Shown here: in pieces, positions 34,458-62,225 of the stretch
Position numbering within the stretch: the first letter of the stretch is position 1
Layout of the letters: every line of letters begins with the position of its first letter
NCBI GenBank assembly: GCA_002104945.1
Contig: MCFH01000015.1
Location: forward strand, 248,001 to 312,000
DNA: 64,000 nt
Reading direction: 5' to 3'
Origin: Piromyces finnis finn
Taxonomy: Eukaryota; Fungi; Neocallimastigomycota
Made by a program: the position numbers and the translations under genes
The notes under the pieces: model-generated
Databases searched by the model: none
What the model saw: the letters and a program-made list of their open reading frames with translations, nothing else
What the model was told of the DNA's origin: nothing

Positions 34458-36377
34458 TTATAAGTTATTGATGAAAGCATGATTGATATTAATAGATTTT
34501 ATTATGGTATCCAAGGATATACCATAAGCATCGACAGGGTCAATCATCATGACGTCACAAGAACCAAAATTACTTTGACATCCATTATTTATTTGGCATA
34601 ATCCATTTTTATCGTTCATTGGATTAACACAAACATTATCTTTGGAACAACAACCATTGGAACATTGAGTATTACCGGCGAGCGTACCACAACCTGAATA
34701 TTTATTATCTGAAGAATAAACAATATGTTTACCATTATTAACAAATCGATTAGGAGTAGTTTTTGAACCCATTTTCTTAACAATATTTTTAATAGACATA
34801 TTGATTAAGGTTTCTCTCATGGTTTTATAGGTGTATTTAGTATTTGGATGTTCACTCATGATTAAAGCAGCTAAACCAGCAACAATAGGAGAAGCAAAGG
34901 ATGTTCCTTCCACATAATCGAATTCTGAACAGGTTGTCGAAGAAGTACGGGAACAACCAGTGAAATCAGCTGTGGTAACAAAACCTGGAGCATGAAAATC
35001 AATACATTCTCCGTAATTTGAATAATAGGCTTCAGTGTAAATTCCACTTAATGAGCTTTCATCATTAAAGGTAGAAGCTACCCCAATAACATTATCATAG
35101 CCAACAAATTTATTTCTATAGGTTTTATCACAGGCATCTTGACCATCATTACCAGCAGAAGCAAAAATAAGGAAACCGGCATTTACAACTTCATTAATTT
35201 TATTTTGAATGTTTTTCTGGAAAGTGTCAATACCATTACGAGAGACATTAATGATACTTTTGTAGGGTTTTCCGTGGGTTTTAATGTAATCAAGAGCAAC
35301 AAGGAAATCATAGTCATAAAAATCAGTAGCAATCATATGAATATTTGCTCTTTTAGCAACACCATATTTATAACCAGCAGCAACAGAAGCAGAGGATGTA
35401 CCATGGAATTGATCACTTGATGTAATATCACAATTCCTTTTTTTCTCTTCGGTCATGATACCTAATTCTCCGTATTCAACAGTCATATCACAAGATACTG
35501 TACGTTCAAAAGTTTTTCCTTTGTAGGTTTTAAAATCAATATGATTTACAGAAATACCTTCATCGATAAAATACATATCAATAAATTGACCACCAGAGGT
35601 TGGATAGTAGTAGTTGTCATCATAACTTTTTACAAGGGTACTATTATAATTATATTGAGATAATACAGATAAATGTCTTGAAGCATTAGCCTGTACACCA
35701 ACAGAGGACCAACCAGTTTCTTTCTTTATATCATTAATATTATAATAGGTAGAAGAAGTGGTGTCTCTTTTGAACTTATTTGTCGTTGCTTTTGTTGCTT
35801 TTGCCGTATGAATATTATATTTTTTGTATTTTGGTTTTTCAAGTTTACCAGCTATTTCACAGCTAATAACATTTGGCATAAGTCTAACCTTTTCAGCAAC
35901 TTTTTTTGAAAGATAGGCTTTTACAGTATAATAATTTAATACAGGACAGAGATGACTTACCAGTTGAGATTCAAATGGAATATATTCAACATTTGAATTA
36001 CTTAAACCTTGACTTGTAGTTTTACTTTTTCTATTTTTGTTTTGAAATAAAAATTTTGTTTTTACATTACTATTTTTGCCACGTTTTCTCAAGGAAGAAG
36101 TTTCAATTTCATTTAATTTTTCGTCTATTTTTCCATCTTCTAATTTAAAAGTGTCTTTATTATCACTAATAGCATCATAGATATCATTCATTCTTTCATT
36201 AACCATAGTGTCAATGGAAATTTGGGTAGATGTTGTAGCATCATCATAATTAACATCAGTACTTTCACGTCTAATAGAAATAATATAATAACTATTTTTT
36301 GCAAATGATTTGTTTATAAAACATGATATTATAAATGTTATTAATAAAAGTTTATATAATGTCATTTTCTTTTTCAT
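34458..36377 (-). CDS. Secreted subtilisin-like S8 serine protease with propeptide and C-terminal CBM18 (hevein-type chitin-binding) module; intronless
   Basis: Catalytic motifs DMYFIDEG (Asp), FHGTSSASVAAG (His), ASAGNDG (oxyanion Asn) and EGTSFASPIVAG (Ser). Cys-rich tail CGTLAGNTQCSNGCCSKDNVC...CQINNGCQSNFGSC. Confidence 0.93.
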   Translation of the reverse strand: MKKKMTLYKLLLITFIISCFINKSFAKNSYYIISIRRESTDVNYDDATTSTQISIDTMVNERMNDIYDAISDNKDTFKLEDGKIDEKLNEIETSSLRKRGKNSNVKTKFLFQNKNRKSKTTSQGLSNSNVEYIPFESQLVSHLCPVLNYYTVKAYLSKKVAEKVRLMPNVISCEIAGKLEKPKYKKYNIHTAKATKATTNKFKRDTTSSTYYNINDIKKETGWSSVGVQANASRHLSVLSQYNYNSTLVKSYDDNYYYPTSGGQFIDMYFIDEGISVNHIDFKTYKGKTFERTVSCDMTVEYGELGIMTEEKKRNCDITSSDQFHGTSSASVAAGYKYGVAKRANIHMIATDFYDYDFLVALDYIKTHGKPYKSIINVSRNGIDTFQKNIQNKINEVVNAGFLIFASAGNDGQDACDKTYRNKFVGYDNVIGVASTFNDESSLSGIYTEAYYSNYGECIDFHAPGFVTTADFTGCSRTSSTTCSEFDYVEGTSFASPIVAGLAALIMSEHPNTKYTYKTMRETLINMSIKNIVKKMGSKTTPNRFVNNGKHIVYSSDNKYSGCGTLAGNTQCSNGCCSKDNVCVNPMNDKNGLCQINNGCQSNFGSCDVMMIDPVDAYGISLDTIIKSININHAFINNL

Positions 36378-37235: not shown

Positions 37236-39051
37236 TTTTTTTCTTTTGTCGATTAATAATAAAATAATACATTTTTTATGGTAAAAAAAAAAAAAACTAA
37301 TATTTTAAATGGATTTTGATAGTATAATAATATATGTATATTAGGTATATAATGTATATAATATGTATAAACTATTTTAGTATTATTTCAAAATAGTTGA
37401 AATATTCTTAATTTTATAGTTTTATATATATATATATATTATTATCTTTCTCTATATAATAATTCTTTTTATTATCAACCCTAGTTTTCTAAATTATCTT
37501 TGACTATTTTTTTTATTAAAATCGTTAAAAAAGTTCATATATTTAAAGATAAAAAAAATTCATATAATGCATATATATCATGCAAAATCGACAAATAGAA
37601 ATTTTAATTATTTTATTAATATTTGGATTGAAATCTTTAAAAATAAATATATATAAAATATATAATATTATATAATATTATATAATATATAGGTTAAGAT
37701 AGATACAAATATTATTTTCTAATATTTTTACTTTAAAATCATATATAAATCTGTAATAGATAATGAAAGAAAGAAAGAAAGAAAAAAAAACTTGGGTTTA
37801 TAATAAAAATTTACATTTATTACTATTATTTAAAATATTGATATTGACTGTAATGAACGTCTATTTATATATAATAAATATATTAAAAAAAAAATAAAAG
37901 ATTGTTACTATTATTTCTAATTATTATTGTTATTACTGTTATTATTTGTCATTACTTTTGTGTATGGGTGTATATTTTGAGGTAAAATGAAAATTTCAAC
38001 TTACTTTTTTTTTTTTTTATTATTTTTATCCTTATTTATTTGAATAATATTCTGATTTGAATTTTATGGTAGTTCTTAATTTATATAATATGGTTTCAAT
38101 TTCGGGTTTTTTATCGGTGATTAAAACATCTAAAATGGTATACATATGTAAAATACGGTGTAATCGATGAATATAATCATTATATTGAACATTTGTATCA
38201 TTTTGAGTAGAAAATGGATTAATAATTTCATTTAATCTAGCTGTAATAGGAATAATAGTTATATCTCTATACATTCTTAGTGTTAATTCGATAATATCTA
38301 TATTTTCTGAATATGGATATTGTTTCAAAGGAACAAACATTGCTCGAAGATAAGGAATAATTCTACTGTATAATAAAATCCATTGATCGACAACACAGGC
38401 CATAACATCATCACTTTTTTCCATGGAATTAATTCGATTACTAATGGTATTCATTCCTGTAATTAAACTATCCGAAACATTACGAACAAAAACCTCTTCT
38501 ACAAAATTTGGATCTTGAATCAAATGTTTGACTTCATCATTAATTTCTTCAATCGAGTATTTTAACTGTTTATCTTCGAATAAAATACGAATGGCAGCTT
38601 GAACAGATTTCCAAACTCTGGCATAACTCATTTCATTGTTAATAATTTCACTGGTCTTAAAAAAATTTGATGAAGGAGAGGATGAAAATTTTTGAGAAAT
38701 TCGACGAGTAACATTATTTAAATTTATGGATGATAAACTAGTTGGAATTCCAGGAGTAATGGACATAGAAGAACTAATTGGTAAATTAACTGAAGATATT
38801 TTTTCTTTTGTCTATTCATCATATAATAATACATTTTTTTTTATGGTATGGTAAAAAAAAAAAAAAAAATTAATATTTTAAATGAGTTTTAATAGTATCA
38901 TATTAGGTATATCAGGTATATAATGAATATGTATAAACTATTTTAGTATTATTTCAAAATAGTTGAAATATTCTTAATTTTATAATTTTTTTTCATATAT
39001 ATTTCATATATATTATTATCTTTCTCTATATAATAATTCTTTTTATTATTA
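37236..39051. repeat. Diverged direct repeats of about 240 bp (37236-37475 and 38799-39051) bracketing an HbrB gene
   Basis: Shared blocks TTTTCTTTTGTC, ATAATACATTTTTT.ATGGT, AATATGTATAAACTATTTTAGTATTATTTCAAAATAGTTGAAATATTCTTAATTTTATA and ATTATCTTTCTCTATATA occur in the same order in both copies. Confidence 0.8.
38032..38766 (-). CDS. HbrB-like domain protein (Bit61/PRR5 TORC2-subunit family), divergent paralog
   Basis: RVWKSVQAAIRILFE...SIEEINDEVK...LITGM...VVDQWILLYSRIIPYLRAMFVPL...LRMYRDITIIP aligns with the neighbouring 305-aa ORF and the recalled HbrB pattern. Confidence 0.7.
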   Translation of the reverse strand: MSITPGIPTSLSSINLNNVTRRISQKFSSSPSSNFFKTSEIINNEMSYARVWKSVQAAIRILFEDKQLKYSIEEINDEVKHLIQDPNFVEEVFVRNVSDSLITGMNTISNRINSMEKSDDVMACVVDQWILLYSRIIPYLRAMFVPLKQYPYSENIDIIELTLRMYRDITIIPITARLNEIINPFSTQNDTNVQYNDYIHRLHRILHMYTILDVLITDKKPEIETILYKLRTTIKFKSEYYSNK

Positions 39052-40155: not shown

Positions 40156-41073
40156 TTAATATTGTAATTCAGTTAATGGATATTTTTTGGTCTTTTTTAG
40201 TGAAATATAAGACATACGGTTATTACCATTGGTATTAGCTCTTAATATCTTTAATACATTATAGATAGATTGTTGTTTTTCATCCAAAATACCGTATAAA
40301 ATAGATAACATTTGTATGAATCGTCCTGAAATCGTATTAAATTGCGGGTCTATTGGAATTTTTCCTGTAAATTGCATATTTAATACTTCTTCAATACGAT
40401 CAATATTTGGTAATATAACAAAATCTCTGAAACAAGTAAATGCCATTCTTGGTATATCAAGAATACTGTATCTTGGGTCGAAAGAAAGAGGTAAAAAAAT
40501 ACCTTTAATGTAAGGCATAATAGAATCAAAGAAAAATGTCCATATTTCCACTAGACGTGAAATTAAAGAATTATCCGTCACTTCTATAAGCTTTGTATTA
40601 ATAGTGTAAATACCATTTTTTAATAATTCATTAATGTTGTAAGCAAGTGTTTTAGGAGTTTTTACTTCCATGCAACGTTTAACCAAATCATTTAAATCTT
40701 CGATAAAGTCTTGTAAACCTTGACCGTTAAATAACGGTAATACTTTAATACATATAATATGCCAGTTATCTTTAATGTTTGTTTCTGAATAGTTAATATC
40801 TTTGTTTAAACTTGCTGAATCAAGTTCACTAATACTTTTTAATATATTTGCTGAAGAGGCTACAGTACCGTGATCCATTATATTATTAAATGACGATAAA
40901 TTTGGTATACTTCTTTTCGATATTTTTCTTACTGGTCCAAATAAAGGAGAAGAAGAAAATGTTGTACTATTTTTAGAACTTAACGAATTCATTGAGTTTG
41001 CTGTTTGAAGTTGACCGGAAGGTCTTCTCAATAACTGAGTTGACGGTTTTAGATTTAATATTTTTTTTTCCAT
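40156..41073 (-). CDS. HbrB-like domain protein (Bit61/PRR5 TORC2-subunit family)
   Basis: DNWHIICIKVLPLFNGQGLQDFIEDLNDLV...LLKNGI...LISRLVEIWTFFFDSIMPYIKGIFLPL...AFTCFRDFVILP...GRFIQMLSIL, after a Ser-rich N-terminus. Confidence 0.82.
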   Translation of the reverse strand: MEKKILNLKPSTQLLRRPSGQLQTANSMNSLSSKNSTTFSSSPLFGPVRKISKRSIPNLSSFNNIMDHGTVASSANILKSISELDSASLNKDINYSETNIKDNWHIICIKVLPLFNGQGLQDFIEDLNDLVKRCMEVKTPKTLAYNINELLKNGIYTINTKLIEVTDNSLISRLVEIWTFFFDSIMPYIKGIFLPLSFDPRYSILDIPRMAFTCFRDFVILPNIDRIEEVLNMQFTGKIPIDPQFNTISGRFIQMLSILYGILDEKQQSIYNVLKILRANTNGNNRMSYISLKKTKKYPLTELQY

Positions 41074-42305: not shown

Positions 42306-44150
42306 CTATTTTCTTGATCTACTTCTTGTTCTGCTTCTGGATCTGGAATAGCTTCTTGCGCGAGTTTTTCTTTTTGGTGAATAGCTACGTCTTCTTGATC
42401 TACTTCTGGTGAGACTTCTAGATCTACTTCTACTACTGCTTCTAGAGGATCGGCTGAAACTACGTGATAAACTACGAGAATAGCTTCTTCTACGGCTTCT
42501 GCTTCTACTTAAACTTCTGCTAAAGCTTCTACTACTTCTGCTACTAATACTACTGCTACGTCCTCTTCTTCTAGTATTAGCGCTATTATTTAATGGACGA
42601 GCGCGTGGTCTTGATCTTGATCTACGACCCTTGCTACGACTTCTAGAGTATGAAGAAATAGATGAGTAGGATGAAGATCTACTTCTTCTTCTACTATATC
42701 TTCTTCTATTACGTGAAATTGATCTAGATCTAGTACGAGATCTTCCTCTTCTTCTTATTGGACTCTTTCTTCTAATTGGTCTACGATTATCATAATTTGG
42801 TCTGTAATGATCACTTGATGTTGCTGGTCTTCTTCTAGTAATAGATGGAGATCTACGAGTAACAGCTGGTGCTCTTCTTTCTATAGCATAACTACATGAA
42901 ATAACAGAACCATCAATTTGAGCTTCATTCATATAACGAATACTGTTCTTTGCAGCATCAGACGTTTCAAAGGATATAAATGCATATCCTCTAGAGCAAC
43001 CCACTAATTATGTTGAAATTAAATTTTAAAATTATAATAAAAAGAAGAATAAAAAATAGAGAGAGTTTGGTTAATCATATGGATAATACATATAGTATTT
43101 GATATTTATAAAAAGAAAATAAAATATTTATGAATTAGGATAACAGTTAATTTGTTTTAGTGCTGAGTAATAAACTCAAAATTTATATATATAAAATGGT
43201 GATTTAATCTATATAGATAATAAAAAATAATGAATAGATAGTGACATTATTCTTTATGAGTAGATTATAAAAATTCTAAATATTGACATGATAATAACTA
43301 TATACTATAATTTTGTTAAAAGTATTCCTGTTTAATATTCCTGTTTTTTCATTATTATACTCTATTAAATCCTTTTTTTTTTTTTAGTGAATTTCAAAAA
43401 AAAAAAAAAAAAAAAAACTGATATTATTCATTTATAAAAAGATCAAATAATCATCCATGTTTAATTCATATTTTTTTTTTAATTTCAAATTTCATTATAT
43501 TTACATTTTCTATCAATTGGAAGATCTAAGCTTGTAATTGTTCCATAGACTCCAAATATTTCTCTTAAATGGTCTACATTAACATTTTTTGTTAGTTTCT
43601 TTACAATAATTCTTGTATTTCTTGATCTTGAATCACTTCTACTTCTTTTTCTGGAATTGGAACGAGATGAATTTCTAGTTTTTGAAAAAGATTTTGAACG
43701 AGATCTTGATGATCTTAAAGAACGAGAGCGGGAGCGGGAACGGGAACGTGTGCGGGAACGTGTGCGAGAACGTGAACGTGAAATAGAGACTGAACGTGAC
43801 ATTGATAAGCTACGATTTCTGGAAACAGATCTTGATTTTGACCTCGATCTTTTTTACATGAACAAATATATTATATATTATTTTTATTATTTTTTTGTTG
43901 TTGTTGTTGAAAAGATGTGAAATTTTTTGAAAATTGTAAAAACGTTTAAATTATTATGGTGTAACAAAAATAGGCATGTATTTTAAGATAATGAAACATA
44001 ATAAACACATTGAAAAACAATATAAAATTAATATTTTATCTCACTTTAGTAACATTTTAGAATAATTAATAAATTACGTTAACCAATTTTTATAATTTAC
44101 CTAGATTCCTTTTTAGTTTTTTCACCTGCTGAGGTACTTTTTTTATCCAT
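42306..44150 (-). CDS. RNPS1: RNPS1-like RS-RRM-RS splicing / exon-junction-complex protein; 3 exons
   Basis: Exon 1 MDKKSTSAGEKTKKES|gt. Exon 2 RS repeats plus TRIIVKKLTKNVNVDHLREIFGVYG...LDLPIDRK. Exon 3 SRGYAFISFETSDAAKNSIRYMNEAQIDG plus a long RS tail. Confidence 0.8.
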
Positions 44151-47641: not shown

Positions 47642-48637
47642 TTATTCTTTTTTATAATTTTCCAAGATTTCAATAATATCAATTAATTGTTCTTGTTTCG
47701 CCACGTCCAAAGCGGTAAGTTGACAATCATCTTTTAAATTAGGATCAGCACCATGATCAAGTAATAACTTGACCACATCTGCATGATCAAAATAACTTGC
47801 AAAATGAAGAGGTGTCATTAAATGATGTGTGATAGCATTTACATCAGCTTTTTTCTCCAATAAATATTTAGCAATTTCAAAACAACCTTGATGACAAGCA
47901 ATATGAAGAGGTGTCCAACCATCATCTGTAACATAATTAATATTGGCATTAAATGATATAAGAAGTTTTACGATAGGTAAACATTTATCATCTTCACACA
48001 TTAAATGTAAAGCGGTATAGTTACATCTTGTTGTATAATTAACTTTAACTCCAGATTCTAAAAGTTCTTTAATTTTTTGCATATTCATTCGTTTGATTTC
48101 GTATATAAAAAGCATTGCTTTTTGAAGTTCTGTTTGAATATTTTGTAAAGGATAACCTAAACTTAAGAAAAGTTCCACACCTTCAATATTATGTCTAAAA
48201 CAAAGAACTCTGAAAGGATCATAATCATAATTTGTTTTTGAATATAAATCTGCTTTATGATTTATTAATACTTCAATAATATCATTTCTACCGGTGGAAC
48301 AAGCCACGTATAATGGAGTTTCCCCATTTTTATTTTTAATATTAATATCTGCACCATGACTTAATAAACTTTCTACAATATGTGTATTATTCTGGGTACA
48401 AGCAATGTGTAAGGCGGTTTCCCCTTCTTCATTTTGATTATTAATATTAATGCAAGGTTCGGAAAGTAAAAAATCAACAACATCAGTTCTTTCTCTACTA
48501 CATGCATATTCTAATCCGGTTTTTCCTTTCTTATCTCTTCGATTAATATTAACCTTATTTTTATTGACAACGGTTTTAACCTTTTCAATATAACCTTCTC
48601 TACAATTTTCTAAAAATTTATTGTAGGTTCTAGCCAT
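47642..48637 (-). CDS. Intronless ankyrin-repeat protein (331 aa)
   Basis: GETALHIAC, GETPLYVAC, GWTPLHIACHQG and TPLHFASYFDHADVVKLLLDHGAD. Confidence 0.95.
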   Translation of the reverse strand: MARTYNKFLENCREGYIEKVKTVVNKNKVNINRRDKKGKTGLEYACSRERTDVVDFLLSEPCININNQNEEGETALHIACTQNNTHIVESLLSHGADINIKNKNGETPLYVACSTGRNDIIEVLINHKADLYSKTNYDYDPFRVLCFRHNIEGVELFLSLGYPLQNIQTELQKAMLFIYEIKRMNMQKIKELLESGVKVNYTTRCNYTALHLMCEDDKCLPIVKLLISFNANINYVTDDGWTPLHIACHQGCFEIAKYLLEKKADVNAITHHLMTPLHFASYFDHADVVKLLLDHGADPNLKDDCQLTALDVAKQEQLIDIIEILENYKKE

Positions 48638-51113
48638 TTTTTTTTTTAAAAAAAAATAATAATAATAAACTTTGATAGATAGATAGACAGATAGATAGAT
48701 TTTTTTATAAAGATATTTGAAATATTTAACTTTTTTTTTTTATTATTATTATGTTGTAATAATTATATATATATTTGACTTTTAATATTAAAATATTTAA
48801 TTATTTTTTTTTTCTTGTTATTGTTGAGAGGTATAGTTACAATTAAGAATTAACTTTTTTTTTTTACTTCTTTATATATTTATTATTTATGACTATATAT
48901 CAAAATTGAGATAACAGATAGAAAAGAGCTTTCTTTTTTTTTTTTTTTTTGATATTGAATATTTAACAATAGAATATAATGAATAATTATAAAACAGATA
49001 GAAAATGGAAATTCCTTGATTTTGTATTTAATATTAAGAATAGTATTGAAATATTTTTGTTTTTATTTTTTTTTTTTAAATAATAATTATAATAATAATT
49101 TTTAAATAAATTGATAATACTCCAAAAAGGTAATATATGATACGACTCCTTTTATATCTATTTTATAAAAATTATCTAATTGTATAATTGAGGATTTTTT
49201 TTATTTTTATTTTACAATATATAGAGCTATTATTTCATATTAATTGTTGTATTGAATAGCATTTTAATAATACTTTATTTTTTAGTGTTGTTATAAAAGA
49301 AGATAAGAATTTAAATAGATTTTTACACACCTTTTTTTTTTCCATAAAAATAAGGATATAATATACTAAAATATCAATTAAATAATTATATAGATTTATA
49401 TATATTTTAATATTTTTTTTTCTTAATATATTATTTTAAAAAAAAAATATTTGTATTTTTAAAATTGATAATTCTTTTATGGAATAATAAAAAAATATTA
49501 TTTATTTAGTTATTCATTTTAGAACAAGTTTTTTTTTTTTTAAAATTTCAAAAAAAGTCAAAAAACATCTTTCAGTTCTTAAAATTTAATTTTTATTATT
49601 TATATTAAAATTAATTTTTTAAAGTTTTTTAATATAAAAAAAAATATTATAAAAAATAAAAAAATAAAAATAATTAATAGCATAGTCACACACACTTCAT
49701 TTCTTATGGTATATTGGGGTAGGTAGCATCTTATGATAAATTCATTACATAAGCAAGTGATGAAACGATAATAATAAAAGATTAGGATCCTTTCCTTTAT
49801 ATGGAATAAAATTAAATACATTAAAATTATATTTTTTTTTTCTTTAATTTCTTTAATGAAAAAATGTTTTAAAATTCGATTTCATTTTTACATCATTTCT
49901 TTTTTTTCTTTCCTTTAAATAACATTTTCAATAAAAAAAAAAACTTTTTTTTCCTTCGCTTTAAATTACAAAAACTTTTCTAAAATATTTTTTTTTATTT
50001 TTTTTTTAAATTTTAAAAATAAAAATTAATTTATTTTTTATTAATTTAATATGATTTTTTAATTTATTATTTTTTATTTAAAAAAAATCACAATTTCAAA
50101 ATTAATAATTAAAATTTTAATTTTGTACCACCTGAAAAAAAAAAGGGAATTTTTACCACAAATCCTGGGAAGAAAAAAAAGGTCACTTGAATAATTATTT
50201 TTAAACTAGTTTAATATTTTTTATTTTATAAAGAAAGGATTTAATATTTCAAATAATAAATATATATATTTATATTCATTTATTTATTTTATTTTATTCA
50301 TGAGATTTAAAAAAAACAATTAATAAAAAATGGTTAAAAATTAAATAATTAAAGGTTTTAAAAAAAAAATAATGCCACATGATCCAGTAATAATCCAATA
50401 CCACCTACAGGAAGTAAAAAAAATATTATAATATGAATTAATAATTATAGAAAAAAAACAGATTACTTTTCAATAAGTATATTAAATTGTAATGTATTAA
50501 ATACTAAATTTTATAATAAAAATAAATATGTTCCTTTTTATTATTATTAAAATTATTAAGTTATTATTAATGTTTAAAGTAATGCATTTAAATTTTTTGT
50601 TTAATTAATTAATTAATTAATTATTTATTTATTTATTTATTTATTTATAATTTAAATTATATAAATTTTGTAATTGCTATAGTAATTACAATTATAATTA
50701 TAATTATAATTATATAATTAATAAGAAATAATGAAATTTATTATTCTTTAATTATAATTGAAAGGACACAAAAAAAAAATAACTATGTTAAATTAGATCG
50801 AAAGGAAATCATTTTTTTGTTAATTAGAACATAAAAAAAAAATAATTATGTTCATTAAAATTTTATATGCTTTTAATTATATAATCTATAATCTTTATAT
50901 GGTAATTATATAATTCATTTGTAATTATTAAATTAGCTGTATAATTAAACATCAACCCTTCCTAGGAAGTAATTGAATTTTTTTTTTTAAAAAAAAAAAG
51001 AATATATAAAAGGAAGGAAGTTGTTTTTAAATTTTTTTTCTATATTCTTTATTTTTAATATCAAAAAGAAAATATACACATAAATAATATACTATTAATC
51101 AAATAAAAAAAAA

Positions 51114-51521
51114 ATGAATCTTAAAAATTTATTCCTTTATACTTTAACTTTAGCTGCCACTGCTTCCTCTCTTCCATTAGAAGTAGAACCAAATGAAAGT
51201 GATGTTATTTTGATTGAACCTCAGGTTGAAGAAACTGCTGTTATAAATGAAATTGAACCACCATTAAAAAGAGATTTTGATCATTCTAAAATTTTCCCCA
51301 TTGAATTCGAAGATAAGGTTAAGGATGAATTAAGATCAGAGGAAGAAAATATTGAAAAAAGAGGTATTAGAAAATCAAAAACAAAATCTATTATTGAAAG
51401 AAGAGCTGCTAAGAAAGCAAAAAAGCAAAGACGTAATTTTGAAAGAAGAATTGCCAAAAAAGCCAAAAAACAAAGACGTCTTCAAAGAAGAGCTGCTAAG
51501 AAAGCTGCTAAAAAATATTAA
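51114..51521 (+). CDS. Secreted precursor with acidic pro-region, dibasic (Kex2-type) sites and a highly cationic repetitive C-terminus
   Basis: Signal MNLKNLFLYTLTLAATASS; PLKR and IEKR sites; tail GIRKSKTKSIIERR-AAKKAKKQRR-NFERR-IAKKAKKQRR-LQRR-AAKKAAKKY. TATAAA-like box near 51005. Confidence 0.8.
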   Translation: MNLKNLFLYTLTLAATASSLPLEVEPNESDVILIEPQVEETAVINEIEPPLKRDFDHSKIFPIEFEDKVKDELRSEEENIEKRGIRKSKTKSIIERRAAKKAKKQRRNFERRIAKKAKKQRRLQRRAAKKAAKKY

Positions 51522-52478: not shown

Positions 52479-52608
52479 TAGTCAATATTTCAAATAAATA
52501 AAATAAAATAAAAAAAAAGTAATTATTAAATAAAATAAATGTAGTCAATATTTCAAATAAATAAAATAAAATAAAAAAAAAAAGTAATTATTAAATAAAA
52601 TAAATGTA
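52479..52608. repeat. 63-bp tandem duplication between the two precursor genes
   Basis: TAGTCAATATTTCAAATAAATAAAATAAAATAAAAAAAA..GTAATTATTAAATAAAATAAATG starts at 52479 and 52542. Confidence 0.85.
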
Positions 52609-53065
52609 AATTAAATGTTCTAATATGCCAATATTAGATGCACTGGTTACACTATCAACATTATAATTAATGATTTAATCAGTTAAATATAGTAACTTTT
52701 ATTTTTTTTTTAATAATTGAAAAATCATTAGAACAAATCATTTTTTTAAACTTTAATCAATTATTAATGATAATGAAACTTGTACTTGTTGCTTTTTTTT
52801 TTTTATAATTATTAAAACCTACTAAATATAACTTTAATAAAAAATATTATTAATATAGATTATTATTATTAATACTTTTTTTTATATACTATATTAAACT
52901 TTATATTTTTTTTTTTCCATTAATTCTTTTAATAAAAAAAAACATATAAAAGAAAGGAATCTTTTCTTTTTTTTTAGAATTATAATTAAAAATATTAATT
53001 TTTTAATTATTTATTTTTTTTTATATAAAAAAAATATACCCATTAAAGCATTAAAACAACAAAAA

Positions 53066-53821
53066 ATGAACTTTAAGAATATTAGTTTATTTCTTTTTGC
53101 TTTAAATTTAGCTTCAGCTCATTTTCATTCATTAGAAAATGAACCAAATAGTATTGTTTTTAGTGATACCCATATTGAATTACTATCCAAAAGAAATCCT
53201 CTCTTATTAAATACTTTTAAAACTGAATTAAATAGTATTTTTATTGAAAATGAAAAAGATATTGAATCCAATGATGCTCTTGAAAAAAGAGCTGTTAGGA
53301 AGTTAAAGCCAATCAAAAGTCAAGGCCGCAGTATTGAACCAAGAGGTATGAAAGTTACTACTAAAAAGGCAGCTAAAAAGCAAAAACGTAATATTGAATC
53401 CGATTCCTCAAGTAAATTAAATGACAATCACATTTTTAATGAGAATGAAATCGGTTTACCCTCCAAAAAAAGTTTACTCTTATTAAATACTTTTAAAACT
53501 GAATTAAATGGTATTTCAACTGAAGAAAAAGAAATTGAATCCATTGATATTCTTGAAAAAAGAGCTGTTGCTAAAAAGGCTGCTAAAGCAGCTAAAAAGC
53601 AAAGACGCAGCGAAGTTGAATTATTATCAAAAAGAAGCCCTCTTTTATTAAATACTTTTAAAACTGAATTAAATGAAATTTCAACTGAAGATGAAGAAAT
53701 TGAATCCATTGATACTCTTGAAAAAAGAGCTGTTAGGAAGTTAAAGCCAATCAAAAGTCAAGGCCGCAGTATTGAACCAAGAGCTATGAAAGCTGCTAAG
53801 AAAGCTGAAAAAAAAAATTAG
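53066..53821 (+). CDS. Secreted multi-repeat Kex2-type precursor: three acidic spacer plus cationic segment units
   Basis: Signal MNFKNISLFLFALNLASA; three copies of LLLNTFKTELN...IES.D.LEKR, each followed by a basic segment. TATAAAAG near 52945. Confidence 0.82.
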   Translation: MNFKNISLFLFALNLASAHFHSLENEPNSIVFSDTHIELLSKRNPLLLNTFKTELNSIFIENEKDIESNDALEKRAVRKLKPIKSQGRSIEPRGMKVTTKKAAKKQKRNIESDSSSKLNDNHIFNENEIGLPSKKSLLLLNTFKTELNGISTEEKEIESIDILEKRAVAKKAAKAAKKQRRSEVELLSKRSPLLLNTFKTELNEISTEDEEIESIDTLEKRAVRKLKPIKSQGRSIEPRAMKAAKKAEKKN

Positions 53822-54143
53822 AAAAAAAATAAAAAAAAAAAAATTTCAAAATATAGATTTAAAATAAAAGTTGTTTAGTATTTAAGTAAAATATATATAT
53901 ATATATATAATAAAATACCATAATTTAAAGTGTACGTAAATATTATTAAAAAAATAAAAGTTAGAAAAAACAAAAATTTTAAAAGCGTCATGTTAATATT
54001 TCAAAAAAAAACAAAAATTTAAAAGTGTCATGTTAATATTTCAAAAAAATTAAAGTGTTTTAATAGTTCATTTACATATTTTTATGTTTTTTATTATTTT
54101 TAATAAAAGTTTCAACAAAGTCATTTAGATATATTTTATACAA

Positions 54144-54197: not shown

Positions 54198-57100
54198 TAA
54201 TCTCTCTTTAAAAAAAAATATTAATATTAAATATAGTATTTATTATATATATTATTAATATTATAATAAATAGTATATATTTTTTAACAAGTATTTTATT
54301 TTTTTTTTTTTTTTAACGGCATCAAATATTTTAAACTTTATTATTAATTTAATTAAAATTATAATACATGTAATAAAAAAATTAAAATTAAAATAAAAAT
54401 AAAAAAAAATATGTTTAAATAAACACAAATGAATAAAAATTGGGTATAATGTATTCTAGTAATTTTAATTAAAGTAAGAAAGCCACTATCATACTAAAGT
54501 ATAATAATTGTATTTGACTTGCAATGGGACATCGAGTCAAAGATCAAAATTTTATCATGGGACAAAATTATGATCTCCATTGGTTGCGCTGCGCCCTCCT
54601 GTCTTACTGTTTCTTCAGCATTGACGCTCTTGGATGTTGCTTCAAACCTTTTGAACATTGACCATTGCTGGCCAATAGCAAAAGGCATGATTTTGGTTAG
54701 AAGTTCCGCGGTTACCGTCAAGAATGGTGCTCCTTCATTAGTACCAGATTGAATCTGACGCTTACAAAGTTCTTTCCATTCCCTTGAATTGTAATTAATA
54801 TTGTTAAAACTTCTTCCCCCAAGAAGGAATTTAAATATTTTACTGCACACACTAGAATAATCATACACATTAATATTCACCGGATTATTAGAACTATTAC
54901 TATCATTAACTAAATTACTATCTAAATTAGAATTATTATCTTCACTATTGCTATCATTATTAATATTATTATTTCTATTACTACTATTGTTATTATTACT
55001 ATTTCTATTATTACTATTACTACTATTGTTATTATTACTATTGTTATTATTATTATTGTTACTATTACTATTACTGTTATTGCTATCTCTACTGACATTA
55101 TCAATTTCATTATTATTGATAGGACTATTGGAATTACGTTGACTGAAAAAATTTAATAGCTGGACTATGGAATCATAATGTTTAATACGGATATCTCTAA
55201 ATGTTGGACAATCTAATAACCAATGTTTAATACTTTGATCTCCACACTTGCAACATGGACAGTAGTTAGGACAAACTGGATCAACAAATTTAGCAGCTTT
55301 GGCAACTCTAGCATCCAACTTGTATCCGCTTCTTTCTTTCAATAGCCAGTAGAAGCCATAGGCAAACTCTGGGTACTCATAACATAATTTAATAAAATAT
55401 TTAGTTTCAATAAATTTATTATCATCATAATATTGCGCTTTGATTGAATTCCCTTTGAGATCTTTCCAATAAAAGTTTTTAACTGCTTTAACATCTCCAT
55501 GCTTCTTTAGTTTTTTTTCAAGTGTCCTACTTGATTTGCACCACGTGTATTTTCTAAATTTAGGAATGTAATTGACAAGGTGTGAGATAATACAATTTGA
55601 GTTTTTCCATTTGTTAAAACATCTAACCTGAGCTAACGCACATTTGGCTGACAATGGAGGAATATTCAAATCTTTTGAGATAGAGTATAAAGATATAAAC
55701 GATACAGCTTTATGAACTCCGGCAACCCATCGTATTCCTTTGTTAACATGCTTCTGAGCAATCCTAGACCTAGCTTTGTTGGATCCAAGTAATGGTGCAA
55801 AGTATGAAACTCTGCTAATCACTTGTGAGTTAAGTACTAGTTTTTTGAAAGGAATAGGAATATTAGGATTTCTTAAGAATTTACTGACTGAGAAAAGTCC
55901 TTTCAAAACCTTGTTATTAAGAACTTTAATTACTGGTTTAAGGGACAAATTCTTATCAAATGGAACACCAAGATAAGTGTAGCAGTCAGTAGTTGGAATG
56001 GGTTGTCCTGCTAAGTAAAATGTTGGATCTCTCTTGTTCTGATTTTCTATTGATTCAGGACGAATCACCATCGTTGAACATTTCTGGATACCAAATTCCA
56101 TTTCATTATACAAGGCCCATTCATTAACTCTTCTAAGCATCTTTTTTAAGCATCCTCTTGTTGGAGCACAAATAACTATATCATCTGCAAAAAGTCCACC
56201 ACAGCATCGAGTGTCACCTAAACTGACTCCTAGATCTTCGCACTCTCTAAATATATCATTAATAAAGAGATTAAAGAGAATAGGAGAAAGAGGGCAACCT
56301 TGACGGACTCCTTTCTTCACATCAAAAGATTTCGAGAATTGTCCATCTAATTTGACATTAGCCTTAGATGTTAAATATAAATTTTTGATAAATTGTAGAC
56401 TCTTACCTCGGATTCCTAAACAATCTAATTTATAGAGAATATTACCGATTGGGACTGAATCGTATGCTTTCCTGAGATCTAAAAAGGCCAAATATGTCTC
56501 TTTATTATCTAATTGACGTCTACGGCATATTTCTTGGATTGAAATGAAAAGACTGATACTTTCTTCCTTTTTTCGAAAACCAAATTGTTCAGGTCTAATG
56601 AAATTATTCTTTAGACCATATTCTGAGATTCTAGTGGTGACAATTTTGGAAATCAACTTAATGCCATTATTGATAAGTGATATACCTCGATAGTTATCAC
56701 AATCTGTCAAATCTCCCTTCTTAGGAATAGAAACAATACTGGATTCATTCCATGAGTTGGGGAAATCTCCATCCCAAATACGGTTGAATAATTTAAGAAT
56801 AAAATTTAAACCATGAGCATCATTATCTGAAGTGGTATTACCGGAAGAATTATTATCTGTAGCATTATTAGAATCATTACTTGATGGAATTAATGCTTTG
56901 TAAAATTCAATTGGAATACCATCCGGACCTGATGCTTTATAATTTGGAGTAGTGAGGATAGCTGACTTGACTTCATCAATACTAATATCTTGGTTGATAT
57001 CCCACTCATCAAGCATAGGAAGTGAAAAACGTTTATTCGTTGGTTCTTCATACCAATGCTCCAAATCAAGACTTACACCACTTGGATCTGATGCAAGGTT

Positions 57101-59089
57101 TTCGAAATGATCATGCCACACTTCAAGTTGTTCTTCCGTAGCAACAACTAATTCTCCATTTTTATTTTTAATTAGTTGAGCAATAAAGAAGGAATCTTTT
57201 CCAATTTTTGCAGTTTTCTTGATCCATTTCCAGGCCTTCTTAGGATTATGACTCTTCATATACTCACATCCTGTTTTAATCCAATGAAGATATTCTTGCT
57301 TCCTAAATTCATTACATCTTTTGTGGATGTAATCAATGAGCTTACGGTAGATTTTAATTCTTTTAATAAATTCATCTATATCATAAATTCTTTCTTTTTT
57401 AAATCTCTTATACAACTTCATTTTGATTTTTTGAAGATTAAAAATTTGTTGTGAAATATGAAATGAAGACTTTATAACATTATTAGCTGAGGTAATACTG
57501 AGCTCGTCTGCAATTGAAAAAGCAGTTGAAGTAAACTCTTTGGAAAGTTCATCTGTAGAAACATTAGGATCGTTGAATTTTGCTGAAAGAATTTGGAATT
57601 TATTATGACTGAGAATAGATTCCTTTTCCTCAATACATTTTAATCTATTCCATTTCAGAATTTTCTTAGGAACATTAAAGTCATTAGAAAAATCTTCCAT
57701 AGGAATAATTTTACCATTAATAAGAAGTGGCTTATGGTCTGATACAGGATAAAAATTATTTATAAATGATCCTGAGTGAATAAGATCTTTCATCTTCAAA
57801 TTGATAAGAGCATGGTCAATGTCGGAAGATTGTTCACCTCGAGTCCAAGAGATAGTCGACCCTCTAAGCGGAAGAATTTCCCAATCTCCTAATCCATTAG
57901 TTGATAACCAATTGGATAATTTTACTTTAGACATATTAAAATCACCAACAAGAATCGATGGATGGGATGAATTAGTTTGCAACCACAAGCGAACTTCTAA
58001 CTTTGCATGATCAACATAGATGTTGTGATGACTATGAGGCATATAAACATTTCCAATCGAGCATTTGAATCTATTCCAAAGACTAAAAGTATAAATAGAA
58101 ATAATATACTTTCCAGAGAAGTTTTCAAGTGAGGCTTGACACGAATTGTGAAAACCTAAATATAAACCTCTCATTCCCGGAACTGATTCGTCAGCTTTCT
58201 TGAAAAAGTGTCTATAGTTTCGCAAAGTAACACGACAAGGATAATCTGTATTCGATCCAGAACCATTACCAGTTTCTTGGAAACATAAAAATAATGGTTT
58301 GAAAATAGCTGTGAAATAGCTAATACTATCTCTCTTTTCGTGATTCCACCCATTGGTGTTCCAACTAAGACAAAAAGAAAAGTTATCAGGCTTGTTGGAT
58401 GAGGAAGAATCGTTGCTATTATTATTATTATTAAAGTCATCGTTATTAATGGATGATGCATCAGAGGAATAAGTAGAACTATTACTAGATGGCTGTGAAA
58501 CTGAAGAACTATCAACTATTGAACTGTTATCAGAGTTGATAGAGCTATTAGAATTAATTGTTGAATGTTGAGATTGAAATTGTGTTTGCTGTAGATCTGG
58601 AATATTTTCATGATTGGAAACTTGTTGAAGATCTTGTTGAAGATCTAGTTGAAGATCGGATTGTTGATGAGATTGTTGAACTGATTGTTGAAATGATTGT
58701 TGAATAGAATGTTGATGTTTATTAGAAACTAAAATTTTACGTTTGAGAGTGGAAAAAGTGTATTTGTGATTCCTTCTACTACGAGCTGAAAAGGAAATTG
58801 AGGTAACTGAAAGTTTCTTCTTTAACATGTGTAAGATTTTAATACAATCTTTCGATGAACCATGAACCTTGACTAAGAAAAAGTGATCATTGAAAGTCTG
58901 AAAATATTTAACACTAATAACTGAATTAAATTTATCTTCTAGAATAACCTCGAGTTTTTCCTATAGCATATTTACTGACCATGATCGAATACCACGGATA
59001 AAGAAGGAGCGAATATCATCTAAGGGGATACCATAAGACCGGGTACCACGTCTGATATAATTCTTATCTTTAATATAAAGGACTGACAT
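54144..59089 (-). mobile_element. Non-LTR retrotransposon (LINE): single long frame with N-terminal extension, APE endonuclease, reverse transcriptase and C-terminal CCHC motif, plus about 350 bp of 3' UTR
   Basis: APE motifs CLSWNTNG, LCFQET, ILVGDFN, SDIDHALI, SDHKPL; RT motifs YRGISL, AFLDLRKAYDSV, GVRQGCPLSPILF, LFADD, YTYLG; zinc knuckle CPCCKCGDQSIKHWLLDCP. Frame 59089-54494 is open except for one TAG at 58963-58961. Confidence 0.95.
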
Positions 59090-61043: not shown

Positions 61044-62225
61044 CTAGAACTTGTTAATGAATTCCCAAGTAGCTTGTGGAACCCAAGATTGGTATTGACC
61101 TGGGTCCTTGTGATCCCAAAGGTGACCACCAGATTGAGTACACCAACGAACTGGGAAACGTTGGTCAACAGTCTTGTAATCGTAACACTTGTGTGGACCT
61201 CCTGGAGTAGCTTCTTCAGCTCTTTCCTTAACGGCAGCACCGTTTTCGGAGTTGTGTTCTAAGATGATATCACGAGCGTGACGACCCATTTCTGGAGTAC
61301 AGAGACCATCATCGAAACCAAGAACACCCATCCAACCAATTGGTTCACCAGTGTGCTTTGGAAGCCAGATGTTACGTTCAGCAGTTTCGTAAACGGCAAC
61401 ACCACGGAGAACCTTTTGGTGGTTCCAGGAAAGACCGTTAGAGAACATAGAACCGTAACTGAAACCAGTAGAGAAGACACGGGATTCATCAATACAGAGA
61501 TCACCCTTTAACTTGGCAAGAAGTTCATCGAACATGTAGTAATCAGCTTCACCCCATGGGAGTTGTTGACCGTTACCTTCTGGAGCAACGAAAATGGTAG
61601 TCTTACCAGTATCTAATGGCTTTAAACCATAGTAACCTTCTTGTTGGACACCTCCGGCCCAACCGCCCATACAGTGCATACCGAAGACTAAACGGTATGG
61701 CTTGCTCTTATCATAGTTATCTGGGATATCAATACGGACAGTACGCTTGTTGTTACCCCATTTGAATTCAAAGGAACCAGTCTTTGGAAGACTTAAGTTC
61801 TTACCACAACCAGATGATGGAACTGGAGTGTTCTTTAAAGCGTAACCGAAACTGTAAGTTGGTTCTTGTGGTTGTTGTTGTTGTTGGTTGTTGTTGTTGT
61901 TGTTACCAGAGCTGGAGCTGGAGTTAATACCACACCATTCATTATTTTCAATACCCCACTTACCATCATTATCAGTTAAAACAACTTCAGTGGTGGTCTT
62001 ACAACATGGGTAATTTAAGGCATTGGCCCAGCAAGAAGTAGCGGCTTGACCATTTGGCATACCACACCATTGACCATTTTCAACACCCCACTTACCATCG
62101 CTATCAGTGTAAACGACTATATTACCATTACAGCATGGATAACCAAGCTTTTGGGAGAAACAAGAGGCAGCAGAAGCCTTGGCTGCGACAGCAGCAATTG
62201 CAGTTAAAACGACAGCGAATTTCAT
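61044..62225 (-). CDS. Cellulosomal carbohydrate esterase (CE1, feruloyl/acetylxylan esterase-like) with two N-terminal fungal dockerin (CBM10-like) domains; intronless
   Basis: Signal peptide; dockerins [11 protein letters not shown]...[10 protein letters not shown] and [11 protein letters not shown]...[10 protein letters not shown]; S/N/Q linker; catalytic domain PSSGCGK...RLVFGMH...IFVAPEG...[15 protein letters not shown] (GxSxG)...GGHLW...TWEFINKF. Confidence 0.92.

Follow-up and report, generated by a model that had tools for sequence, protein, structure and literature searches.

The gene pair and its genomic setting

The DNA analysed here, hereafter the window, comprises 64,000 nucleotides of the genome of Piromyces finnis, a fungus of the horse gut, on contig MCFH01000015.1 of assembly GCA_002104945.1, where the record position equals the window position plus 248,000. 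On its forward strand, positions 53066–53821 hold an uninterrupted ORF of 251 aa, running from an ATG start to a TAG stop, that is a candidate pre-pro-polypeptide of the type known as Kex2-processed repeat proteins (KEPs) and is referred to as g53066. A second forward-strand ORF, g51114 (51114–51521; 135 aa), is located 1.5 kb upstream. It encodes an acidic pro-region behind a signal-like N-terminus and, after a single EKR junction, three Lys/Ala-rich 9–10-mers that are separated by RR and arise from a 42–45-nt tandem repeat.

Several lines of evidence indicate that both are real coding genes. At the base composition of the window, the probability of a stop is 0.095 per codon, giving a chance of about 1e-11 for the 251 open codons of g53066 and of about 1e-6 for the 135 of g51114. 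Both ORFs are islands of 29–30 % GC (29 % for g53066) in flanks of 10–12 %; the base composition of the window is extreme, with a GC content of 10–14 % between genes and 24–44 % within them. Both have the order GC1 > GC2 > GC3, as do the genes in the window for the ankyrin, HbrB and subtilase proteins. Gene models for the two have, moreover, been deposited on MCFH01000015.1. A chance ORF is excluded as an explanation of g53066. The deposited g53066 model encodes 247 aa over 53066–53923, a range that exceeds the plain ORF by 102 nt, and differs from the 251-aa reading solely by dropping its final four residues; the plain ORF requires no intron, and no GT donor was seen at the point where model and ORF diverge. 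Exact products of the pair were absent from run assemblies, used as a transcript proxy, and occur on the genome contig only. Codon bias in the pair is weak, with AAG accounting for 24–28 % of Lys codons versus 92 % in a nearby CBM10 gene, and, as a rough proxy, it does not suggest very high expression.

The neighbourhood was surveyed by Pfam scans of fifteen ORFs, i.e. nine of at least 150 aa from the 30–62 kb half of the window plus six shorter ones, and the domains found were ankyrin, HbrB, RRM, S8, CBM10 and RVT_1 only. Closest to the pair on its upstream side is an ankyrin-repeat ORF of 331 aa on the reverse strand (47642–48637). Farther upstream and also on the reverse strand are two ORFs (42306–43004 and 43485–43802) that match RRM_1 profile positions 38–69 and 1–33, respectively, and are evidently a single gene with an intron within the RRM, and two HbrB-like ORFs 1.4 kb apart (38032–38766 and 40156–41073) that represent a tandem pair or else belong to a single gene as two of its exons. 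The sole S8 peptidase of the window, a reverse-strand Peptidase_S8 ORF of 639 aa (34458–36377), has proteinase K, aqualysin, keratinase and PCSK9 as its best solved relatives and is therefore a proteinase-K-type subtilase and no kexin; being of that type, 17 kb upstream and many genes away, it was rejected as a dedicated processing enzyme. Downstream of g53066 by 673 nt sits an uninterrupted reverse-strand ORF of 1444 aa (54494–58828; RVT_1, E 1.6e-35), with long Asn/Ser-rich runs and a GC content of 27–36 % versus 12–18 % in its flanks, that looks like a non-LTR retrotransposon. Beyond it, also on the reverse strand, a CBM_10 ORF of 393 aa (61044–62225) carries two fungal dockerin repeats; its GC content of 42–44 % and its strong codon bias (Lys AAG 22/24, Arg CGN 10/11), to which no other gene checked was alike, suggest high expression, and hence a highly expressed cellulosome component. 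The intergenic DNA on either side of g53066 also contains tandem duplications, at 52479–52608 (two copies of 65 nt, 97 % identical) and 53965–54049 (2.1 copies of 40 nt, 95 %).

Repeat and cassette architecture of g53066

The 251-aa protein can be divided into ten segments, all read from the forward strand. Its signal-peptide-like N-terminus (residues 1–18; 53066–53119), recognized by rule of thumb as was that of g51114, has Lys4, an 11-residue hydrophobic core (residues 6–16, mean KD 1.98) and A-S-A at −3/−1, immediately before residue 19. A pro-piece follows (residues 19–43; 53120–53194) that contains L-E-N-E-P-N and ends in KR. Acidic unit 1 (residues 44–75; 53195–53290; net −3) begins N-P and ends in EKR, and basic unit 1 (residues 76–108; 53291–53389; net +12) consists of an 18-mer ending in P-R and then a Lys/Ala-rich tail up to KR. 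A unique acidic/polar linker (residues 109–135; 53390–53470), which ends in KK in place of the KR of the other copies, precedes acidic unit 2 (residues 136–166; 53471–53563), again closed by EKR, and basic unit 2 (residues 167–181; 53564–53608; net +7), a Lys/Ala-rich 15-mer that ends in RR and is without the 18-mer. After a nine-residue spacer (residues 182–190; 53609–53635) with a KR end come acidic unit 3 (residues 191–221; 53636–53728; net −6), which starts S-P and ends in EKR, and basic unit 3 (residues 222–251; 53729–53818; net +9), composed of the same 18-mer and a Lys/Ala-rich C-terminus.

At the DNA level, a 123-nt unit is present in three in-frame copies starting at 53171, 53447 and 53612, which are 63–85 % identical without gaps, and a longer repeat of 138 nt relates 53256–53393 to 53694–53831 at 85 % identity. 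Within the latter, 69 nt spanning the EKR junction and the 18-mer are exactly repeated on the forward strand (53277–53345 and 53715–53783), such that residues 76–93 are identical to residues 222–239. Since these 69 identical nucleotides lie beside acidic units 1 and 3 that are only 67 % identical in an ungapped comparison, in which an indel of one residue in unit 1 depresses the value, they speak for a patch of recent duplication or conversion; the exact repeat carries no information on selection.

When g53066 is cut in silico after each KR or RR, eight fragments result with net charges of −1, −3, +12, −5, +7, 0, −6 and +9, and a KR or RR stands at each change of charge. Across the pair there are four cassettes, and every one has the same EKR junction; the junctions upstream of the acidic units are KR in two cases and KK in one. 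Lys and Arg together make up 20–26 % of both proteins, and the mature part of g53066 has 7 [KR]R sites versus 2.9 expected (2.4-fold), a number reached by 70 of 5000 shuffles (p ~0.014). For g51114, the corresponding values are 7 sites versus 4.0 expected, reached in 315 of 5000 shuffles (p ~0.06). The enrichment is real, yet moderate. Half of the 14 Arg residues of g53066 fall within KR/RR, and 2 more are in P-R.

Beyond its signal-like start, g53066 has no later hydrophobic stretch: the maximum KD(19) past residue 22 is 0.47, and by this measure of hydropathy a further transmembrane segment is absent. Cys is lacking from both proteins and Tyr and Trp from g53066 as well, and the sole N-X-S/T sequon of g53066 falls within the signal region. 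No Pfam family reached its curated cut-off against either protein. The rows below cut-off, namely the small subunit of a poxvirus capping enzyme (15.5 bits vs 25), birnavirus VP3 (16.6 vs 22), PH_22 and INTS1_R4, were taken as noise. Among PDB sequences, g53066 had no match at E up to 1. AF2, run without an alignment, returned helices only for g53066, with a mean pLDDT of 63 and a pTM of 0.20; one helix covers residues 3–22, the best-scored helices are the acidic units, and a single continuous helix (residues 134–190) crosses a junction. The quality of this model is too low for a search by fold. Because of the lack of Pfam and PDB matches and the low-pTM, all-helical model, g53066 is predicted to be no folded domain protein.

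The paralogue g51114

The smaller gene is collinear with residues 1–108 of g53066. Common to the two are an M-N-x-K-N start, a hydrophobic core, L-E-x-E-P-N, an acidic stretch, EKR, a basic stretch and K-K-Q-[KR]-R, and the N-terminus of g51114 has the same signal-like layout, comprising an N-terminal Lys, a core of 11–12 residues across the pair and small residues at −3/−1. Composition-adjusted BLASTP aligned them at 33 % identity over 123 aa, with an E value for the pair of 9e-7. Their raw local score of 82 is 7.6 sd over shuffles of the whole sequence and still 4.4–4.9 sd over shuffles that keep the signal/acidic/basic layout, of which 1 in 2000 reached it. Given the E value and the scores above layout-preserving shuffles, g51114 is a credible diverged paralogue of g53066. 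Between the genes, the acidic units share little but charge and the Lys/Ala motif is nearly identical.

The DNA flanking the two genes shows no similarity beyond that of AT-rich stretches drawn at random from the window (z 0.2–2.2). Two forward-strand motifs are nonetheless shared upstream: a TATA-like motif 122 nt before the ATG of g53066 (52944–52959) and 110 nt before that of g51114 (51004–51019), and another at 35 nt (53031–53046) and 45 nt (51069–51084), respectively. Both are found nowhere else on the forward strand of the window; as the patterns were picked after seeing the pair, they are a hint only.

Much of what the first-pass annotation had noted at this locus was borne out by these analyses. 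The ORF with its three repeats is present as 251 uninterrupted codons with three in-frame 123-nt copies, the 18-mer is exactly duplicated, and the alternation of acidic and cationic segments is recovered as eight KR/RR fragments of alternating charge. All of the features that were said to be shared with the upstream gene (strand, M-N-x-K-N, L-E-x-E-P-N, EKR and K-K-Q-[KR]-R) appear in the pairwise alignment, and the proposed paralogy agrees with the 33 % identity over 123 aa and the outcome of the shuffles. The suggested multi-cassette architecture of Kex2 type is likewise upheld as a prediction, from the signal-like N-terminus, the pro-piece, the KR/RR-bounded repeats and the invariant EKR.

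Search for relatives elsewhere

Relatives were sought among clustered proteins, JGI metagenome contigs and the PDB, with unannotated anaerobic-fungus genomes lying outside this scope. A word-indexed search of 5.8 billion clustered proteins, using the 251-aa and 135-aa sequences and a two-sequence profile, returned the window's own products only, and a search of JGI metagenome contigs gave no relative. In an exhaustive phmmer search of 1.84 billion representatives, the sole non-self match was P0002, a protein of 903 aa from outside the window (E 2e-12) in which a 52-aa repeat that bears an F-x-T-E-L-N-E motif occurs in eleven or more identical copies. P0002 was rejected as a relative, being one weak 32-bit match at F-x-T-E-L-N-E multiplied by 11 identical repeats, and it is unlike the pair in having no dibasic junctions and no signal-like start and in being rich in Pro, Gly and Ser; the match is judged to be due to chance, amplified by the repeats. 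By eye, the C-terminus of P0002 resembles dynein light chain. The exhaustive search missed the paralogue g51114, and therefore equally diverged relatives elsewhere would escape it. The two genes are best read as lineage-specific genes of Piromyces finnis.

Proposed membership in the KEP class

KEPs are defined by a signal peptide and at least three similar peptides situated between KR, RR or KK sites (PMC6339444, PMC7329392). The survey of Le Marquer et al. 2019 asked that repeats cover at least 15 % of the chain (PMC6339444), that of Umemura 2020 set the repeat length at 8–100 aa (PMC7329392), and both called signal peptides by SignalP (PMC6339444, PMC7329392). As described above, g53066 has a signal peptide by rule of thumb, three acidic units closed by EKR plus three Lys/Ala-rich pieces, and, with a maximum KD(19) of 0.47, no further transmembrane segment; the acidic units are 31–32 aa each and cover 37 % of the chain (3 × 31/251). 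Its predicted features therefore agree with every sequence criterion of the class, that for the signal peptide by rule of thumb. The likeness extends to the pro-region, to the bounding of at least three peptides by KR/RR and to the presence of two repeated kinds, as two motif types occur in 77 of 1193 KEPs (PMC6339444). Being without homologues is also usual, as this is the case for 2560 of 7878 KEPs, about a third (PMC7329392).

The phylum, too, is already known for KEPs. Counts given in the two surveys are 15 for Orpinomyces, 7 for P. finnis, 21 for A. robustus and 35 for N. californiae (PMC6339444, PMC7329392), and Supplementary Table S1 of the second survey names GCA_002104945.1, the assembly with the 7 KEPs, as Piromyces finnis (PMC7329392). 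Within the portion of the PMC6339444 supplement that is accessible, Orpinomyces appears in the species and KEP-rich tables only, and no mention there would fit a list of fungi lacking KEX1, KEX2 or STE13. What differs in g53066 is the regular alternation of an acidic 31-mer and a cationic Lys/Ala-rich piece, a feature unnamed in the KEP surveys (PMC6339444, PMC7329392). Because g53066 fits the published criteria and the class has been surveyed kingdom-wide, with anaerobic gut fungi and the P. finnis assembly included, the initial description of the locus as an undescribed system is unsupported, and the best reading is that a known, highly diverse class has here a new member, an orphan.

Comparison with other precursor systems

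The Saccharomyces alpha-factor precursors MF(alpha)1 and MF(alpha)2 are like g53066 in having a signal, a pro-piece and KR sites. In alpha-factor-like KEPs, X-Pro after KR is a signature of Ste13-type trimming (PMC6339444), and comparable dipeptides are present in both genes, with N-P and S-P heading two of the three acidic units of g53066 and, in g51114, A-A following two RR sites and I-A a third. However, there is no sequence relation, neither MF_alpha nor MF_alpha_N of Pfam matched g53066 at E up to 1, and the units of g53066 are far longer, acidic and interleaved with basic pieces. The Ece1/candidalysin precursor of Candida albicans is a secreted polyprotein that is cut at KR into several peptides, and g53066, as predicted, has a similar secreted-polyprotein layout with KR-bounded peptides. 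Searches of Pfam and the PDB and by phmmer gave no named match to Ece1/candidalysin for g53066, which differs also in having no hydrophobic, amphipathic membrane piece, its own pieces being either of net −3 to −6 or Lys/Ala-rich.

Precursors of ustiloxin-type RiPPs combine a signal peptide with Kex2-bounded repeats (PMC7329392), and this arrangement of the ustiloxin, phomopsin and asperipin-type (dikaritin) precursors is also that of g53066. Yet the dikaritin repeats are 8–14 aa long versus 29–33 aa for the g53066 units, and g53066 has neither of two further dikaritin marks, a UstYa gene nearby and Tyr in the repeated core. Among the fifteen ORFs scanned with Pfam, a survey that short exons may escape, none near the pair matched DUF3328/UstYa, tyrosinase or methyltransferase. 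From the lack of a nearby modifying enzyme and of Tyr it follows that g53066 is distinct from ustiloxin-type RiPPs, and linear peptides are indicated.

The precursors of magainin (Xenopus), apidaecin (honeybee) and Ib-AMP (Impatiens) alternate cationic peptides with acidic pro-pieces and release them at basic sites. They are the closest match to the acidic/cationic alternation itself, in logic only; they belong to other kingdoms and have no sequence relation to g53066, whose cationic pieces are shorter and much less hydrophobic.

Interpretation and alternative readings

The interpretation favoured, at slightly better than even confidence, is that g53066 and g51114 are a Kex2-type precursor pair of which the cationic motif is the likelier conserved product. 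The first-pass annotation had taken the basic half of each cassette as the cargo, a choice that the sequence does not decide. The reverse assignment, in which a KEP-type precursor would yield the acidic, hydrophobic-faced 29–32-mers as signalling or pheromone-like products and the Lys/Ala stretches would be spacers, is rather unlikely. The acidic unit occurs thrice in g53066 and is its best-conserved part, two of the three copies begin with X-Pro directly after KR in the manner of the Ste13-type signature, and these units form the highest-confidence AF2 helices; the conservation is expressed by 78 % aa identity between units 2 and 3 and a pN of 0.12 versus a pS of 0.27, values based on about 19 differences. 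However, little more than charge and a few residues of the acidic unit is conserved in g51114, whereas the Lys/Ala motif is almost letter-for-letter the same in both genes and is triplicated in g51114. Another reading would leave the protein intact, as a secreted or wall-associated disordered polyampholyte that serves as a coating, adhesive or matrix and has dibasic sites as a by-product of its Lys/Arg-richness. Its standing is that of an unlikely, if conceivable, explanation: the only moderate excess of [KR]R and the long AF2 helices that cross junctions, like charged single helices, speak for it, but KR or RR lies exactly at each charge change, EKR is invariant in four cassettes, and 7 of 14 g53066 Arg residues are in KR/RR with 2 more in P-R.

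Lys/Ala-rich runs resemble H1-type tails, and by this analogy the proteins might be unsecreted, intracellular nucleic-acid binders with a histone-H1-like tail. This is highly improbable, as both paralogues have a hydrophobic, signal-like N-terminus, Pfam finds no linker-histone or nuclear domain in them, and the acidic cassettes and dibasic junctions would be left unexplained. Improbable as well is that the pair consists of young ORFs in AT-rich DNA that are non-functional or barely functional, were locally duplicated and have no biological role. Consistent with such an origin are the orphan status of both genes in every database searched, the very recent rearrangement marked by the exact 69-nt repeat, the weak codon bias compared with the CBM10 gene, and the retrotransposon just downstream; against it stand the retention, by two diverged paralogues, of open frames, a signal-like start and junctions, together with the GC islands, the gene-like GC at codon positions and odds of about 1e-11 for a chance ORF. 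For the favoured precursor reading, the element that the two genes share and that is amplified in both is the Lys/Ala motif ending in K-K-Q-[KR]-R, and on this ground the conserved product is more likely to be the cationic pieces.

Proposed products and function

The sequence of g53066 has three cassettes, each an acidic, helix-prone 31–32-mer followed by a Lys/Ala-rich basic piece, and under the precursor reading the products of both genes would be small, cysteine-free, non-globular secreted pre-pro-polypeptides. After removal of the signal peptide, a Golgi kexin would cut past KR and RR, with cutting at the single KK and the two P-R sites less sure, a Kex1-type carboxypeptidase would trim the basic ends, and linear, unmodified peptides would exit the cell. 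Within the precursor, the charge of the basic pieces may be balanced in part by the acidic ones.

The cationic pieces are 8–18 aa long and of net +3 to +5, with 0–25 % large hydrophobics and a negative mean hydrophobicity. To judge from their composition, they resemble binders of polyanions more than they do membrane-active helices, and their candidate roles are polyanion binding and action on competing microbes. The earlier proposal that the pair yields a library of cationic, antimicrobial peptides is unsupported, because the pieces are rich in Lys and Ala, of little length and with few large hydrophobics, unlike classical membrane-active peptides; an antimicrobial role is possible but weakly founded. 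The genes that Swift et al. 2021 reported were bacteriocin-like only and came from two anaerobic fungi other than P. finnis, for which they reported none (PMC8106346).

In the gut, anaerobic fungi are greatly outnumbered by bacteria, little is known of how they compete, and ribosomal secreted peptides would be for them a cheap and barely explored option. A rather doubtful extension of the precursor reading is that the pair belongs to a family, private to Piromyces or a narrow clade, of short polycations that are masked by acidic helical pro-pieces, freed by kexin and directed against rumen or hindgut competitors. If true, no ribosomal system of antimicrobial peptides that is endogenous, i.e. 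not horizontally acquired, would have been described for Neocallimastigomycota before such a family, which would also mean that the polyprecursor design of amphibian and insect host defence had been reached independently in an early-branching fungus. At present, the pair adds one more stand-alone KEP candidate to a class with thousands of predicted members, for very few of which a role is known. If expressed and processed, it would give a concrete, easily detected set of peptides, the masses of which follow from the junctions, and would be an example, among fungal KEPs, of the design that pairs acidic spacers with cationic peptides.
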